Assembly: GCA_965240325.2 (NCBI GenBank)
Contig: OZ251245.1
Span: forward strand, 992,001-1,056,000
Length of the DNA stretch: 64,000 bases
Direction: 5' to 3'
Source of the DNA: Rebecca billardiae RCC1528
Lineage: Eukaryota; Protista; Haptophyta
A program made the position numbers and the translations under genes. Within the stretch, counting starts at the first letter, position 1; each line of letters opens with the position of its first letter. Positions 1-7,604 of this stretch are shown here, in pieces. The notes beneath the pieces are model-generated. The model was not told the origin of the DNA. It did no database searches and saw nothing but the letters and a program-made list of their open reading frames with translations.

Positions 1-1459
1 GCCCAACAGCCTCCTCCTCGCCGTCCTGGCGCCGGCACGGCAGATACGCGGCGCGCCGACCTACTGCCCGAACGCGGACGCGCCAGCAGACGCCGGTCAG
101 CGGCTGCTCGCGCACCACGCGGCACTCGCGCGCTGCCCCACGATGGCGACGTGGTGCCCCTCCGGTTGGACGAAGCCATCTAATTCCACGCGATTGGAGC
201 GGCGACATCGGTCTCCGCTCTCGCCGCGCGACCTCGCGTGCGAGGCCGGGTGGAGCGGACGGCAGCTGCCGGTGCGCGAGGCCTGCGATTGGCCTCAGCC
301 GCGCGCGTGCACCGCCTCTTCGTCATACGGGCACTCCTTCCCTGCGCTGCTCGTCCACGCCAGTCGGGACACGGGCCTGGTCGTGTACAAGGCGAAGAAG
401 GCGGGCTCGACATTCATCGAGAAGTGGTGGAAGGCGTGCTTCCACGCGGGCGGCGTGGACCCCAACGAGCCCATCGAGTTCGCGCCGGGCGTGCGCGCGC
501 ACGCGCTGCTCACGGTGCGCGAGCCCGCGCAGCGCGTGCTCTCCGCGCTGGGCGAGCAGCTCTTCTGGAAGGCCGGAGAGGGCGTGACGCTGCGCTCCGG
601 CCGCGCGTTCCTGCCGTCGGTGACGGCGCTCCTCCGGCTCGCCGGCAGGGAGCACGCGGAGCAGATCGCGCGCACGTACGGCGGCAGCCCAGCCGAGTGG
701 CCCGTCGCCGCCTACGAGCGGCTGCTCGCCGGCCTGGTCGAGAGCGGCGAGGACTGGGTACTGAGCGGTCTTGGCCTGCGCGGGCCGGCGCTCGCGGCAG
801 CGCTACGGACACTCGTGCGCGCGACGGGCGGGCACGCGGGCGAGCGGGCCGAGCTGGCCACGCGCCACTCGCACGACGAGGCCCTGCGTCTGCACTCCTT
901 CCTCGCGCTCGCCGAGTGCACCGCTCGCTTCACGATGGCGGTGCAAGTGCTCAGCGCGTCGGCGAGCGCCACGCAAGCGGCGCACGCGGACGTGCCGATG
1001 CTCGAGAGGCACGAGCAGTACCTGATACGCCACCGGCCCTACAGGGACGGCAGCGAGCGGAGGTGGCGCGCGAGCGCGCAGGTGCAGCGCAGTGTGCACA
1101 CGGAAGTGCTCGACGACGAGCTCAGCGCGAGCCTGCGCGCAGCCAACCTCTCAGCGCTGCTGGATCGCTGCGGGCTCCCCGGGCGCATGAACAGCGCGGC
1201 GTCCAAGGAGCGGTACCGGCACGGCGAGCAGACGGCCAAGTCGCTGTACGCAGGCGGCGCACTCGACGCGCTGCTGCGCAAGGATGCGGCGATGATGCAG
1301 AGCGTTTGCCGCGCGTTCTACCAGGATTACGTCTGCTACGGATATGCACTGCCCGCAGAGTGCGATGACGCCCTCCACCCCGGCTGGCGATGTCCTGCCG
1401 CCAATTGGACGATTATGCCGCCCGTCGGAGACGTGGGCGCTGCCACGACGACCCTCTAA
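1..1459 (+). CDS. Sulfotransferase-like protein (Sulfotransfer_2-type), probably 5'-partial
   Basis: The frame is open from position 2 to TAA at 1457-1459. It has a 5'-PSB-like motif KAKKAGSTFI, a 3'-PB-like motif TVREPAQRVLSA and a C-terminal FYQDYVCYGY resembling the Y..D...FGY end of this family. Confidence 0.6.
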   Translation, partial: PNSLLLAVLAPARQIRGAPTYCPNADAPADAGQRLLAHHAALARCPTMATWCPSGWTKPSNSTRLERRHRSPLSPRDLACEAGWSGRQLPVREACDWPQPRACTASSSYGHSFPALLVHASRDTGLVVYKAKKAGSTFIEKWWKACFHAGGVDPNEPIEFAPGVRAHALLTVREPAQRVLSALGEQLFWKAGEGVTLRSGRAFLPSVTALLRLAGREHAEQIARTYGGSPAEWPVAAYERLLAGLVESGEDWVLSGLGLRGPALAAALRTLVRATGGHAGERAELATRHSHDEALRLHSFLALAECTARFTMAVQVLSASASATQAAHADVPMLERHEQYLIRHRPYRDGSERRWRASAQVQRSVHTEVLDDELSASLRAANLSALLDRCGLPGRMNSAASKERYRHGEQTAKSLYAGGALDALLRKDAAMMQSVCRAFYQDYVCYGYALPAECDDALHPGWRCPAANWTIMPPVGDVGAATTTL

Positions 1460-1942
1460 AGCTCTACCAGCCCCGCCCACTGTCAACGCAGTAGCTACCG
1501 TCCGTAGGCGTAGTTCAGCAGCGCGCCCGCGTGAGTGATGACGCGTCCGTCTGGTGACGGTCATACGTATATATCCGATAGAATTGGTCCCACGCCTGCA
1601 AGTTGTCCCGTCCCGCGCCGCCACTACTATATCTCCGACTATGAGGCTGTCAGCCGCGCCGCCGCTGGCAACAGACAGCAACAGTGACTCAGTGAGTAAT
1701 GTGAATCACGCGTCGGTCAGCCAGCCAGGCCCGGAGGCGTCTGACGAGTGCGACGGCCACACGTCAGCAAGGACGTAGTGGCTCAGCCCTGGCTGGATAT
1801 CATGTCTGCTCTTCAGTCACGACGTCGAAGCAATCGGCTATGCCAGCGGCACATGTGACACAGTCAGACTTTCAGCTCCGAGGTTCTTCTGACTTCCGTG
1901 CGAGGCTCGACCACCCGACTGTCGCGCCATCTGTGCTGCCGT

Positions 1943-2431
1943 CTACATGGGAACGAGATCAACGGTCTCAGCGGCGTGGTGGCGGTGGTGGTGGTGGCCG
2001 TGGTGGTGGTGGTAGCGCTTCTCCTCGAGCTCGAGCGCCTCGACCGCGTGGTGGCGGTGGTGGTGGCTGAGTGGGGAACAGGTTGTGATGGGGAGGGCAA
2101 GGTGTCAGCACGCGTGCATCCTCCGTGGGCGGGCGCGCGCAGTGGGCGCCAGCGCGGAGCGAGATAAACGTACTGGTGGTGGTGCCGCTTCTCGACAAGG
2201 TCAACCGTCTCCGCCGCGTGGTGGTGGTGGCGGCTGTCGTGGGCGAGGCGCGCGGGCACGCAATCAATGGTGAGTTCAGCACGCGCGCGCGACCCGCGCG
2301 CTGCTGACGAGTGGAGGCGGGCTCAGGCGTGGGGAATGTGGGTGGCGTGCGTACTGGTGGTGGTGGTGACGCTTCTCCTCGACGTCGACTTCCATGTCGA
2401 ACTCGACGGGCTGCATGTTGAAGAGATCCAT
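1943..2431 (-). CDS. 86-aa histidine-rich repeat peptide/precursor, 3 exons (2431-2355, 2233-2174, 2066-1943)
   Basis: ATG at 2431; introns GTACGC..ACAG (121 nt) and GTACGT..TCAG (107 nt), both phase 2; 77+60+124 = 261 nt ending in TAG. Product: MDLFNMQPVEFDMEVDVEEKRHHHHHRHHHHAAETVDLVEKRHHHHHHHRHHAVEALELEEKRYHHHHGHHHHRHHAAETVDLVPM. Confidence 0.75.
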
Positions 2432-2770
2432 TGCGATGGGACGGCGGGAGTCGAGTCGAGACCGGCCGGAGGAGCGTGAGCTTGTCGTCTGCGCTCGGTT
2501 TGCAAAATGTCCCGCCAATGGTGAGCGGACCTGAAAAGCGAGCGTTCGGCGGATGTAGCACAACACAGACGGAACGAACAATCGCGGGTCCGGGAGAGTA
2601 CCAAACAAATACCGTATCGGTCAGGGCAAAGGGTGTCGTCAAGGGAAGCATCGAGGTGGCGGTCGGCACCAAGGCCAGAGCAGTCGCGCGGGTGGACGCG
2701 AGGCGACAAGCCCCGGCGGACCACACGCACGCCACTTCCTTGGACAATCGAACGCGCACTCGGCTCAGCG

Positions 2771-2992
2771 ATGGCTCTTGTCGTGCAGTACCCCAGCGGG
2801 GAGATCTTGCAGTGCTCGGGGGCCATGAGCGGCGAGGAGCACATCGCCCCGCACTGCCTCGCAATCGCGCAGTCGGCAGCGGCGCTATTGGAAGGCGAGG
2901 GCGGTGGGCTCGAGCGCATGACCATCACGTTCGGCCGGAAGGCGTACATTTTGGCCTTTTCGCCCACGGCTGTGCACGTGACAAAGGCATGA
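2771..2992 (+). CDS. LAMTOR4: Ragulator subunit LAMTOR4-like roadblock protein (start may lie further upstream)
   Basis: GEILQCSGAMSGEE...LERMTITFGRKAYILAFSPTAVHVTK parallels, by eye, the LAMTOR4 pattern GAVLASSGDLENDE...[26 protein letters not shown]. First in-frame ATG at 2771. Confidence 0.6.
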   Translation: MALVVQYPSGEILQCSGAMSGEEHIAPHCLAIAQSAAALLEGEGGGLERMTITFGRKAYILAFSPTAVHVTKA

Positions 2993-3548
2993 GGCCCGTG
3001 CTCAAGCTTCCATTCTGCGTCCCTCTCACGGCGCCCTCTCACACGTCCTCGCAGCTCGCGGACGTCGTGGAGGGAGCCACTGGGCTTCGGGCTGCTGCAG
3101 TGGCGTTTGGCTGCTTCCAGTGTGGCAGCGCGTGTCACCATTGGGTCTAGTGGATCTCACTTACGGGTGACTTGGCGGATGGCCACGCGGGCGGGCGCCG
3201 GTCCGCACGAGCAGTGCCCACACATCAGCCGAGTCCGCGAGTGTCACTCTCCCGTCTCCGATGCCAGATGACTCATATCATCTAACTATACAGTCATATC
3301 ATCACTCTACATCATCATCAGGGCCGCCAGGCGCCCCTGCGCGCACTCAAATAAAGATATCCGGCCGCGCGCAGTGCGCAGTCGAGTCGTGAAGCCTGCC
3401 GGGCTGAGTCGACGGCCATCTGCCGATCAGTAGTGCCCGATACAGCCCGGCCCGCGGCCGCAGCCCGTGTCAGGCGATGCACGCGTGAGCAGACTACGGC
3501 TGCTTTGTCAGCATCGGCCCTGGGCCTGGCGTGCGCAGCCGCTCAGCA

Positions 3549-4796
3549 TCAGCTCGGCGCGCGGCGCTGCCCGTGGATGACTGCGTCCTCAAACGAGCCA
3601 AAGTCCCTGTCTGCGCGGAAGTGGCTCAGGTCGAAGGTGTGCGCGGCCGCGCCGTCCGTGGCGAGCGAGGCGAGCACGTCGCCGCACCACGGCGCCAGCT
3701 TGAACCCGTGGCCGGAGAACCCCGCGCCCAGCACGAGCCGCCCGCCGCCCGGTGTGCGCATCGCGTCCAGCACGTAGTCCTCGTCCGGCGTCATCGTGTA
3801 CGCACAGTGCTCGGTGCGGCGCGGGCCGGCGTCAGCGTCCACGTCCGGCAGGCTCGCGCGCACGAACTCGCGCACCGCCGCCTCGGCGTGCGCGTCGTCG
3901 ACGTCGTCGCGCGCGTCGGCGTCGTCGAAGTACGGGCCGTCGTGCAGGCCGAGCTTGATGCAGCCGTCCGCGGTGGGCATGCCGTAGACCTTGCCCTCCG
4001 CGTCGTAGTCGATGAGCACCGGGGTGGCAGCCAGCTCGGCCGCGCGCGCCGCTGGCAGCTGCCAGTAGCTGGTGCGCACCTTCTTGGGGCGCAGGGGTAG
4101 CTGGGCCCAGGGCGAGCGCGCTGTGAGCGAGAGCCGTGCGAGCAGCGGCCCGGCCCACGGCCCCGCCGTGAGCACGCACGCGGGCGCGCGGAAGCTCACG
4201 GCCTGATCGCCCGCGCCGCCCGCGCCGGCGCTCTCGACGCGAAGTTGGCCGCCGTCGTCGACAATGTCTGTCACAGCGTGGCCGGTGAGTATCGTGCAGC
4301 CCCGGCGCTGCGCGAGGTCGGCCAGCATCGCGCGCGCCGCGTCCGCGTGGATCGAGCCCGCCTCGGGCGAGTACACCGCCTCGTACTCGTCCGGCAGCCG
4401 GAGCAGCGGGAAGCGCTTTCGGACCGCCGCCGGCGTGAGCCGCTCGTACGGCACGTCGTAACGGTCGCAGCCGGCGACGAGGGCGGCGATGCCGGGGTTT
4501 CCCGCGCGCGCAAAGTCGAGCCCGCCCGTGCGCGTGATCACGCGCACGCCCGACTCGCCCTCCGCCTCCGCCCACAGCGCGTACGCGCTCGGCATCGCCT
4601 CCATGTAGTGCCGCTGCGGGTACGTGCGCCGGATGATGCGGCTGCAGCCGTGCGAGCTGCCTCGGTCGTGGGTGATGGAAGGGAAGCGCTCGATCAGGAG
4701 CGTGCGCTGCCCGCGCAGCGCGAGGCGCCACGCCGTCGCCACGCCGACGATGCCTCCACCCACCACGATCGCGTCGAACGCGGCCGCCGCCGCCAT
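3549..4796 (-). CDS. FAD-dependent monomeric sarcosine oxidase / L-pipecolate oxidase family
   Basis: Rossmann motif DAIVVGGGIVG, GSSHGCSRIIR, flavinylation-site motif CAYTMTPDEDYVLD and GFSGHGFKLAP. Confidence 0.92.
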   Translation of the reverse strand: MAAAAAFDAIVVGGGIVGVATAWRLALRGQRTLLIERFPSITHDRGSSHGCSRIIRRTYPQRHYMEAMPSAYALWAEAEGESGVRVITRTGGLDFARAGNPGIAALVAGCDRYDVPYERLTPAAVRKRFPLLRLPDEYEAVYSPEAGSIHADAARAMLADLAQRRGCTILTGHAVTDIVDDGGQLRVESAGAGGAGDQAVSFRAPACVLTAGPWAGPLLARLSLTARSPWAQLPLRPKKVRTSYWQLPAARAAELAATPVLIDYDAEGKVYGMPTADGCIKLGLHDGPYFDDADARDDVDDAHAEAAVREFVRASLPDVDADAGPRRTEHCAYTMTPDEDYVLDAMRTPGGGRLVLGAGFSGHGFKLAPWCGDVLASLATDGAAAHTFDLSHFRADRDFGSFEDAVIHGQRRAPS

Positions 4797-4894
4797 CGTG
4801 AACCCCAGCTACACTGGCAGCCACGGTGGCTTGCGGAAAGCTGGGTCGGACTGCACGGACTGCAAGGCCGGCGGCGGCGGCGCGCGCGGGCGCC
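4797..4894. promoter_or_regulatory. Putative bidirectional promoter (98 bp between divergent ATGs)
   Basis: Head-to-head oxidase and C2-protein genes; inferred from geometry only. Confidence 0.4.
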
Positions 4895-5907
4895 ATGCTG
4901 CAGCTCAAGGTGTTCGACGTGTGCTTCGAGCAGGAGCCGCCCGAGGGCGCGGAGTTCTTCGTCAACTGCGACATCGTCGGGCACACCCTCGAGGGCCGCG
5001 ACGCGCTCGCGTACGACCCGCGGGACGACGGGCTGCTCGAGTTCAACCAGACGTCCGTCTTTAGAGCGGAGCCGGGCACGGCGTTGCGCGCGGCGCTGCG
5101 CGACGCGCTCGCGAGCGCGGACGAGGAGGACGCGGACGTCTTCTTCATCGTGTACCGCGAGGGCTCCGCAGGCGACGGCGCCGACGGCACGCCGCGCGAG
5201 GTCGGCTCCGCCTTCCTCAACCTCCAGTCTATGCTCCGCGACCGTTGCGACCGCCTGGACGAGACGCTGAATCTGCTCGACGACGGCGGCACGCTGGTGG
5301 GCGCGATCAGCGTGAGCGTGCTCGGCTGGCCGTTCCTCGCGCGCGTTGGCGCGCCGCCCTTCGACGCGCAGCTCTGCCGCCTCGCGCACGCGCCGCCGCC
5401 GCCGCCGGGCGCGCGCGCCGCGCCGGCGGCGCTCTTTGTGTCGCTTGGGCAGCTGCAGCTCGCGCCGGCGCTGCTGTGGGCGCGCCGGCCGGAGCACGGC
5501 GCCGCGGAGGCGGGGATGGACGGCGTGTCGCTGGCGGATGTCTTCTGCGCGTGCGAGCTGCCCGGCGAGGCCCCCGGCGAGAACGCCGCCCTCGAGACCC
5601 CCTCCCTCACGCTGCCACCGCTCTCCTCGGTGGGGCTCGCGCCGGCGGCGCGCGGCGGCGGGAGCGGCGGCGGGAGCGGCGGCGGGAGCGGCGGCGGGAG
5701 CGGCGGCGGGAGCGGCGGCGGGAGCGGCGGCGGGAGCGGCGGCGGCGGCGGCGCGCAGCCGCCAGGCGGCGGCGTGGTGCTCACGTTCGACTGGACGAGC
5801 GCGCCGATACAGCTGCTGCGCGCGGAGCGCGTCGCCGCCGCGCCCGCGGCGTGTGCGCCAGCTGCCGCAGCCGCTCCCGCCGGCAGCGCGGACGGCGGTG
5901 GCCACCG

Positions 5908-5949
<42 letters not shown>

Positions 5950-7354
5950 CGGCGCGGCTGCTGTGGTCGAGCGGCTCGCCGCGGCGCTCGCGCCGGACGC
6001 GCCCGCCGCGGGCTCGGAGCTGCGCGTGGTGGTGCTCGCCGAGAGCGACAGGGGCGCCGACGAGCTCTGCTCAGGCACGCTCAGCCTGAGAGACGCGCTC
6101 GCGAGCGCGCGCGCGCTGCCGCCTGCAGACGGGAGATTGAATCTCGTCGTGCCGCTCGCGGACGCGGAGGGTGCGCCCGCGGGCGCGGTGAGCGTGGGGC
6201 TGGGCGGCTGGGAGGTGCTCGGCGAGATCGCCGCGCTGGGGGCGCAGGCGTCGCAGCCGCAGCCGACTGTGCGTGCGGCCGTCGCTGACGACGGAGCCAG
6301 CGCGCACAGTGCCCTAGCTGCGCCAGCTGCGGCGGCGGTGGCGGCGGTGGCGACTGCGGCTGCTCCTGCCGCCGGGGCGAGCGAAGGCGGCGCGGCCACG
6401 GGGCGGAGCGCGTCGCAGAGCACGTTGGTGGGCACGCCGGCGGCGGCGCCGGCCGCGGCGCCGCGGGCGTGCACCGCAGCGCAGCAGGCGGATGGTGAGG
6501 AGCCTGCGCGGACGGCGACACCGGCGGGAGCCGTGGCGGCGGCTGCGACGGCGGCGGCGCAGTCGCCGAGCGCGTCGGGTGTGCAAGCGGGCGCCGAGCG
6601 TGGCGCAGGGAGCATGGCGTCCTGCGCGCCGAGCGCCCACTGCCCGCCGGCGCAGGGTGTGCCGGCCGAGGCTGGCGCGCCGCTCGCGGGCGCCGCCGCT
6701 CTGGCCGCGCCGCGCGGCGGCGGCGGTGGGAGCAGCCGACAGTTGGGGCCGCTTCGCGTGGCCCCGCACCGCGCCTCGCAGCCGCAGCAGCCGCCACCGC
6801 CGCCACAGCCGGCCACCTGCCACAGCCCGCCGGGCGGCGGCGGCGGCCTCGGCGCAGCCGCGCACCCTGACCACCTCCGGGGCGGGGCAGGGCAGCAGCC
6901 GCCGCAGCCGGCGCCGCGGGGCCCGAGCCAGCGCGAGATTGATGAGCGCGCCGCGCACATGCGCGCGCAGAGGGACCAGCTGCGCGCGCGCCAGCCGCAG
7001 CCCGCGCCGCCCGCGCCGCCCGCGGGCAGCGGCAGCGCCGAGCCGGCCGGCCGCGGCGCGCCGCCGGCTGAGCGCCGCGGGAGCGGCGGTGGCGGCCGGG
7101 TGATGCCGTCGCCGCGTGTGCGGCCCCCGGGCGCGACGGCGGCGGCCGGGCAGCACGGCGCGCCCGCGAACGGCGCGCGCGCGCCGCCGCCGCGCCCGCC
7201 GCCGCTCCCGCTCGGCGCCGCGTCCGCAGCGGAGCCGGCGCTCGACGAGCGCCCCAAGAGCGCGCGCCGCATCAACGCCAAGCACGAGCGCATGCGCGCG
7301 CAGCTCGCGAGCCAGCTGCAGCAGGACCTGCAGTGGGGGCGGCAGCAGCAGTAG
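4895..7354 (+). CDS. Protein with two tandem C2-like domains resembling the RPGRIP1 C-terminal C2 domain, plus a low-complexity tail
   Basis: First ATG at 4895 (MLQLKVFD). Domain 1 has FFVNCDI..LEFNQTSVF..VFFIVY..EVGSAFLNL..VGAISVSV. Domain 2 has the LETPSL motif and ELCSGTLSL..AGAVSVGL. Confidence 0.55.
5654..5737 (+). repeat. (GGCGGCGGGAGC)x7 encoding (GGGS)7 inside the second C2-like domain
   Basis: Direct reading of a 12-bp tandem repeat. Confidence 0.9.
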
Positions 7355-7604
7355 TACTCACTAGTCGTAGCTGAGGCGGACGCGCGCACGCGCGGGGCTG
7401 CGCTGAGTGCGATGCTGTAATAGTACAGTTAGATGACAAGGCGCGCAGTCGTCGTATACCTGTCACTGTGCATCATATCGCTATATGCGGTCTGAGACTG
7501 TGAGTGACGAGTTATAGCGCGTGACTACAGATGCGCGCAGTGTGACGATAGATTCTTATAAAAGTGATACTATGATAGATGATCGATGATTGATGATGAT
7601 GACG

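Follow-up and report, generated by a model that had tools for sequence, protein, structure and literature searches.

A small gene of three exons, lying on the minus strand at positions 1943-2431 of the window (the whole 64,000-nucleotide stretch of Rebecca billardiae DNA that was analysed), encodes a histidine-rich protein of 86 residues. By comparing this gene with its relatives in the same genome, we found that the spliced nuclear gene is real, far beyond chance, and that it belongs to a gene family that is genuine and unnamed. Judged by its leader and by the VDLVP segment that follows its cores, it is one of four poly-His paralogues and a sister to a group of Cys/His mini-proteins. The reading that we favour, with confidence and doubt in about equal measure, is that the product may be an intact, cytosolic, disordered protein that buffers or sequesters metals and releases them in a pH-dependent manner. 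The gene is built from the following parts.

2355..2431, minus strand: exon 1, 77 nt, with the start codon at 2431-2429; the 21-residue acidic leader and the His start of core 1
2234..2354, minus strand: intron 1, 121 nt, GTACGC...GACAG, phase 2, splitting a CA/C His codon
2174..2233, minus strand: exon 2, 60 nt; the end of core 1, the spacer AAETVDLVEKR and the start of core 2
2067..2173, minus strand: intron 2, 107 nt, GTACGT...CTCAG, phase 2, splitting a CA/C His codon
1943..2066, minus strand: exon 3, 124 nt including the stop codon TAG at 1945-1943; the end of core 2, the spacer AVEALELEEKR, the 13-residue core 3 and the tail AAETVDLVPM

The joined coding sequence comprises 261 nt. Exon 1 is translated into the leader MDLFNMQP...EEKR followed by four and two-thirds His codons of core 1, exon 2 into R-H4-AAETVDLVEKR-H3, and exon 3 into H3-R-H2-AVEALELEEKR-Y-H4-G-H4-R-H2-AAETVDLVPM-stop. 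The resulting protein consists of the 21-residue acidic leader, three His-rich cores (10, 10 and 13 residues), two 11-residue acidic/hydrophobic spacers and a 10-residue tail. Each core is preceded by E-K-R and holds one Arg; the longer third core also contains one Tyr and one Gly. His accounts for 28 of the 86 residues (33%) and is encoded by CAC in every case, and there is no Cys. Both introns begin with GTACG and end with CAG, following the GT-AG rule, and both interrupt the frame in phase 2. Neither intron length is a multiple of 3, and if intron 1 is retained, translation reaches a stop at 2276.

An earlier reading of this DNA, made from its letters alone, had proposed the same three-exon gene, and our exon-by-exon translation gives the same text. 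Its count of 86 residues with 28 His and its layout of three EKR plus His-core modules were reproduced from the exons. The repeated AAETVDLV that it described is indeed present twice, in the exon 2 spacer and in the exon 3 tail, and these two copies are identical at every non-synonymous site, with changes at 6 of 6.7 synonymous sites. We also confirmed that the gene is invisible in the list of open reading frames, from which it is missing because the first in-frame start codon of exon 3 is the last ATG. No in-frame ATG was found upstream of the start of the window copy.

When the assembly to which the window belongs (72 Mb in 41 contigs) was searched at the DNA level, copies emerged on contigs C5 (a tail-to-tail pair), C20 and C36. 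The C5 and C20 paralogues match positions 1-258 and 366-489 of the query contiguously, exactly the 107 nt of intron 2 being missing. They begin like the window gene, carry an intron (134 nt in C5, 112 nt in C20) in the corresponding codon of the first His run, and also end alike, with ...VD-I-L/V-P-M-stop. The position of intron 1 is common to the window, C5 and C20 copies, and intron 2 is found only in the window copy. After splicing, EKR stands at residues 19, 40 and 61 in each of the three independent poly-His genes, giving an exact module period of 21 residues, and the junctions are supported because any other junction would break this period. All nine cores of the three independent intact genes are preceded by EKR, with synonymous variation of the Arg codon (CGT, CGG and CGC at the three sites of the window gene); in this count, the coding exons of one C5 copy (C5a) stand also for its twin (C5b). 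The core length is 10 in eight of the nine cores, the exception being core 3 of the window copy. As to where the introns came from, an introner origin was rejected, introns 1 and 2 both being unique in the genome. A search for intron 2 as a copy of intron 1 yielded only a non-collinear 17-nt GC-rich match, and even the orthologous introns cannot be aligned.

The exclusive use of CAC, the period-3 and period-15 arrays that TRF detects within exon 3, and a 2-nt insertion at the end of exon 1 in paralogue C5b would all suit a non-functional locus, either a CAC microsatellite that happens to be open in one frame or a duplicate in decay. Such an origin is extremely improbable, and we regard it as largely refuted by the near-constant core length and exact period described above, by the internal repeat, whose peptide stays identical under saturated synonymous change, and by a dN/dS of around 0.25 (0.22-0.28 over 53 non-core codons of the poly-His paralogues). 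By this last measure the non-core codons, spacers included, are under purifying selection. The DNA motif encoding HHHHHRHH is also rare genome-wide, with 10 matches vs 4 in the control. Additionally, the window was compared with two Logan assemblies from this organism or one very close to it, made of genomic DNA and not cDNA: over 5.4-5.7 kb, 2 sites differ in one and 14 sites, plus 3 indels, in the other, and neither shows a change in the His-rich gene or in its His-run lengths.

Divergence is distributed unevenly along the gene. Exon 1 shows 82-88% identity between paralogues, and introns and flanks lie at approximately the shuffled baseline. The C5 twins have no mismatch in 252 exon positions vs 4 in 134 intron positions, and their flanks are roughly 20% mismatched. 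Between the window and the sample ERR14847151 there are 14 substitutions in 5.7 kb, along with intergenic indels of 7, 4 and 1 nt (window 1700-1712 and 3399-3402), and these differences suggest a second haplotype or strain.

The gene has further relatives in the genome. A DNA pattern for the leader gave nine matches in the genome and none in the reversed control, and an E-K-R-H-H-H pattern gave 11 matches vs 0 in the control. Because all of the latter fall within four genes, the poly-His subtype has four members. The Cys/His subtype comprises one intronless 100-aa gene on C36 and, clustered on C19, four intact 99-aa genes and a fragment; the family as a whole is multi-copy, with tandem and inverted duplicates. 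Cys/His proteins contain two 24-residue cores with two Cys each. The leader pattern MDLFNxQP is common to the two subtypes, in which residues M1, D2, L3, F4, N5, Q7, P8 and F11 are invariant. In a profile-profile comparison, the poly-His tail aligns with the segment after the first Cys/His core, x-VD-L/I-V/L-P (P = 2.4e-4). The leader, with its DLF..QP, acidic stretch and EK, looks like the first copy of the spacer motif and not like a separate element. At the site equivalent to EKR, the Cys/His subtype has EK-H, EKG, EKH or EKK. Of the poly-His genes, the window copy has diverged furthest (dS 0.6-0.75 from the others vs 0.32 between C5 and C20), and its tail is the poly-His tail nearest the Cys/His subtype. 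Other loci with His tracts, on C1 and C21, proved to be wrong-frame R/H-rich readings and are unrelated.

The inverted C5 twin (C5b, C5:2164552-2164939) deserves a separate description. Its 2-nt insertion sits at the very end of exon 1, next to a donor GTGCGT, and its exons are otherwise identical to those of its partner. The usual junction loses the frame, and a GT four bases downstream keeps it, placing T-S-A inside core 1. From this sequence, C5b may be a young pseudogene or a splice variant.

The sequence-only reading had also raised the idea of a Kex2-processed precursor of several peptides, and on the predicted protein, secretory Kex2 processing is not supported. That reading had itself noticed the lack of a visible signal peptide, and this holds: over the first 30 residues the maximum Kyte-Doolittle(8) value is 0.12 and the longest hydrophobic run is 2, and the N-terminus is acidic (leader net charge about -5) with no hydrophobic core. 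A hidden upstream exon encoding a signal peptide, which had been left as a way out, is excluded because conservation in the nine family members compared begins exactly at the ATG and no AG acceptor site adjoins it. With neither a signal peptide nor an upstream exon, a Golgi kexin cannot reach the protein. The dibasic site is moreover not a family feature, being replaced in the Cys/His subtype as described above.

The search for suitable enzymes gave no support to such processing either. The only P_proprotein match of the genome (C37:709316-709624, 28.9 bits) lies in a 1586-aa open frame and is not joined to a subtilisin domain; domain searches, which an S8 exon could escape, detected no S8 domain in this frame or on contig C37. 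The frame occupies positions 221-4978 (minus) of the extracted C37 stretch. Elsewhere in the genome there are at least 38 S8 subtilisin matches, including a repeated set on C5 (841-888 kb). We found no processing or modifying enzyme common to the family loci: in an all-against-all comparison of open reading frames within 10 kb on either side of five loci, only the family genes themselves were shared, and no RiPP-type tailoring enzyme stood next to the precursor gene at these five loci. Pfam assigned to the neighbours a DAO oxidoreductase (window locus only), RCC1 repeats (C19) or nothing.

The strict EKR conservation in the poly-His subtype is nevertheless real, and simple metal binding leaves the strict conservation of EKR, leader and spacers unexplained, for which reason some chance has to be kept for a cleavage that is not secretory. 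One such reading, which we consider unlikely, is a multi-core precursor cut after each E-K-R, and perhaps also after the leader, so that three His-rich peptides with antimicrobial, signalling or metal-carrier roles would be released. The EKR ahead of nine of nine cores with its synonymously varying Arg codon, the succession of acidic spacer, dibasic site and cationic core that resembles known multi-copy precursors, the internal repeats with KR between them (two of the three features that define KEPs; PMC6339444) and the N-terminal leader kept across two subtypes with different cores all agree with it. It is opposed by the acidic N-terminus without signal peptide or upstream exon, by the altered boundary in the sister subtype, by the sole P-domain match lacking a subtilisin domain and by the neighbourhoods without an enzyme in common. 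In addition, the spacers take up as much length as the cores and purifying selection acts on them too, and the leader resembles a first spacer copy (DLF..P / VDLVP, acidic stretch and EK) and not a recognition sequence. Quite unlikely, in our estimate, is a variant in which the motif shared by spacers and leader (DLF..P / VDLVP, acidic stretch and EK[R]) would guide a cytosolic or organellar protease on a signal-peptide-less multi-core precursor to free His-rich or Cys/His metal-carrier peptides, or in which the proteins would serve intact as scaffolds of metal/polyphosphate granules. If peptides were released by a protease in this way, they would represent a ribosomal-peptide route not described in haptophytes.

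We return to the favoured metal-buffering protein, whose function, including metal binding, location and pH-dependent release, we infer from composition and architecture. The sequence-only reading had likewise proposed a protein for metal binding or storage, and this part of it is still the one that we prefer. The 86-residue protein, carrying no targeting signal, would stay intact in the cytosol and would be largely disordered when metal-free. Its imidazole runs, aided by the neighbouring carboxylates, would bind and buffer divalent Zn, Ni, Cu or Co, and acidification would free the bound metal, since the protein, with an isoelectric point near pH 7, turns strongly cationic below pH 6.5 (computed pI of about 7; net charge about -5 at pH 7.5 and about +14 at pH 6). 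We prefer metal buffering because the two subtypes keep the same scaffold and frame while their cores have in common a richness in metal-ligand residues, which are His alone in one and His plus Cys in the other. The 28 His, the absence of a signal peptide, the multiple copies and the absence of a fold were further points counted for it. AlphaFold gave the poly-His body no globular fold and one continuous low-confidence helix (mean pLDDT 60.5), and modeled each Cys/His module as a small helix-hairpin (pLDDT about 70-76). Metallothionein-type CxC/CC clusters are absent from the Cys-free protein, no metal transporter or chaperone was found near the family loci, no known metal-responsive promoter element was recognised in the upstream regions, and neither Pfam nor the poly-His profile hmmsearch indicated homology to a characterised metal-binding protein.

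The same charge behaviour could be read differently. Acidic and His blocks alternating at the exact 21-residue period, which is kept in three paralogues, might form a pH-switchable block polyampholyte in which metals are not primary and which would self-associate, condense or bind polyanions such as polyphosphate or nucleic acid. The pI of about 7, the steep charge change between pH 7.5 and pH 6 and the continuous low-confidence helix without globular fold are consistent with such behaviour. Polyphosphate binds His repeats, and Pavlova-group cells have prominent polyphosphate bodies. The sister modules with Cys and His, predicted as small hairpins, fit metal sites better than a charge switch, and we give the polyampholyte a small chance of being right.

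Two further features lie next to the gene or close to it.

2432..2632, minus strand: 5' flank, putative 5' UTR and promoter, pyrimidine-rich, not conserved among paralogues, holding ATCCGCCG at -123
3549-4796, minus strand: gene for a DAO-family FAD oxidoreductase, sarcosine-oxidase-like, intronless, 415 aa, assigned by Pfam

The 8-mer ATCCGCCG is located at window 2554-2547 (minus), -123 from the ATG, and four of the five independent members of the family have it at 56-176 nt upstream of the start codon. The window background amounts to about 0.02 per 300 nt; in composition shuffles, 8-mers of this kind averaged 0.0, with a maximum of 1. It offers a weak lead to a promoter element that the family might share. 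The best named match of the DAO gene is Diacronema lutheri KFE25_003799 (57% identity), and local synteny is not conserved because the neighbours of this gene in D. lutheri and on related contigs differ (adh_short, arginase, lactonase). The D. lutheri genome has 73% GC (PMC8379373), and GC in the window is 59-83%. The match and the GC content agree with a haptophyte of the Pavlovales group but of another genus, and the sequence-only reading, which had turned to haptophyte transcriptomes for comparison, holds in this respect.

Several other open frames surround the gene. A frame of 119 aa at 2633-2992 (plus) without Pfam match runs divergently from the His-rich gene, with about 200 bp between the two starts; if it is a real gene, a short bidirectional promoter would be common to both. 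A 438-aa frame at 143-1459 (plus) is convergent with the His-rich gene and has a weak Sulfotransfer_2 match (E 0.24). KAGST and REPxxRxxS motifs can be seen in it by eye, and motifs of this type mark the PAPS-binding sites of carbohydrate sulfotransferases. Farther along, very long frames at 4826-7354 (plus) and 3832-7389 (minus) overlap and contain GGGS and PPPL repeat runs, and at least one of them must be a mirror-frame artefact of GC-rich repeat DNA.

For relatives elsewhere, the outside searches and the fold predictions took exon pieces and paralogue exons as queries; the joined 86-aa model served for the counts of composition, charge and substitutions. Pfam gave no family for the exon pieces and paralogues. 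Neither a Cys/His member nor C5 exon 2 retrieved anything in word-indexed searches among 5.8 billion proteins, and when the poly-His body profile was run exhaustively with hmmsearch on 1.84 billion representatives, there were 0 matches at E <= 0.001. There was no usable match among ESM Atlas look-alikes, and the intronless members were not present in the public protein collection upon exact look-up. No family member was located in the flanks of five DAO orthologues, that of D. lutheri included. The leader DNA pattern had a sole match in JGI metagenome contigs, which we rejected as chance, as it lies in an unrelated frame of a 55% GC contig. At the present locus, the public gene caller recorded a wrong-frame 252-aa Pro-rich open reading frame (ERR14847151 contig 2952-3710, equal to window ~1968-2730 minus). 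By these sequence searches the family has so far been seen only in this genome, and its absence outside carries little weight, since genes of this kind are missed by database gene callers; the searches used could have detected proteins of related algae only where these derive from transcripts.

The finding opens no long-standing question. It illustrates how, in algal genomes of very high GC content, small spliced genes go unseen by open reading frame tracks as well as by database gene callers, and the wrong-frame 252-aa frame in the public collection is a concrete case of a gene hidden in this way from protein databases. Should the protein be a metal buffer, bacterial Hpn would have in it a modular counterpart from a eukaryote, and it would be a candidate in the handling of the trace metals Zn, Ni, Co and Cu by marine phytoplankton, in a group that is used in aquaculture and in metal-toxicity work. 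Together with its Cys/His sister, the conserved EKR and spacers offer a natural series on the division of work between His runs and Cys/His hairpins.

Within the same genome, the closest comparison is with the Cys/His mini-proteins. They are alike in the invariant leader residues, the EK boundary before each core, the post-core segment (A/E)(A/V)(D/E)xVD(L/I)(V/L)P, the size of about 100 aa and the lack of a signal peptide. Unlike the poly-His genes, those of the Cys/His subtype are intronless and encode two 24-residue cores with two Cys each in place of three poly-His cores, and one long acidic linker in place of the 11-residue spacers.

Among systems from other organisms, the fungal KEPs and other multi-copy precursors (PMC6339444, PMC7329392) are similar in their internal repeats, in having KR just before a short core, in small size and in several gene copies. 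Three features define KEPs as a class, namely a signal peptide, repeats within the protein and, between these, Kex2 sites (PMC6339444). The window protein has repeats with KR between them but no signal peptide, it has long, conserved spacers, its Cys/His sister subtype has lost the dibasic site, and the domain searches run on this genome identified no canonical kexin. Histatins (PMC12787115) are His-rich cationic peptides that bind Cu, Zn and Ni, and cleavage of the window protein into peptides would give similar products; however, histatins are secreted vertebrate proteins with signal peptides and a much lower His density, and there is no homology.

The nearest likeness is to Hpn of Helicobacter pylori, a 60-aa protein with 28 His together with two pairs of Cys that sequesters nickel in the cytosol and has a lineage-restricted paralogue (PMC4671568). 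Hpn and Hpn-2, like the protein predicted here, are very small, cytosolic, without signal peptide or globular fold, and form a lineage-restricted pair or family with a Cys-containing relative. Their extreme His content is likewise arranged in runs, 28 of 60 residues in Hpn vs 28 of 86 here. The poly-His profile search returned nothing that would indicate sequence homology, and the likeness is one of analogy. The window protein, unlike Hpn, comes from a eukaryotic spliced gene, is built from 21-residue modules with acidic spacers, an EKR boundary and a conserved leader, and has no Cys, and its metal binding is predicted. Tiny His-rich cytosolic metal-binding proteins are a kind known from bacteria, and a spliced, modular eukaryotic version with a Cys/His sister would be new.
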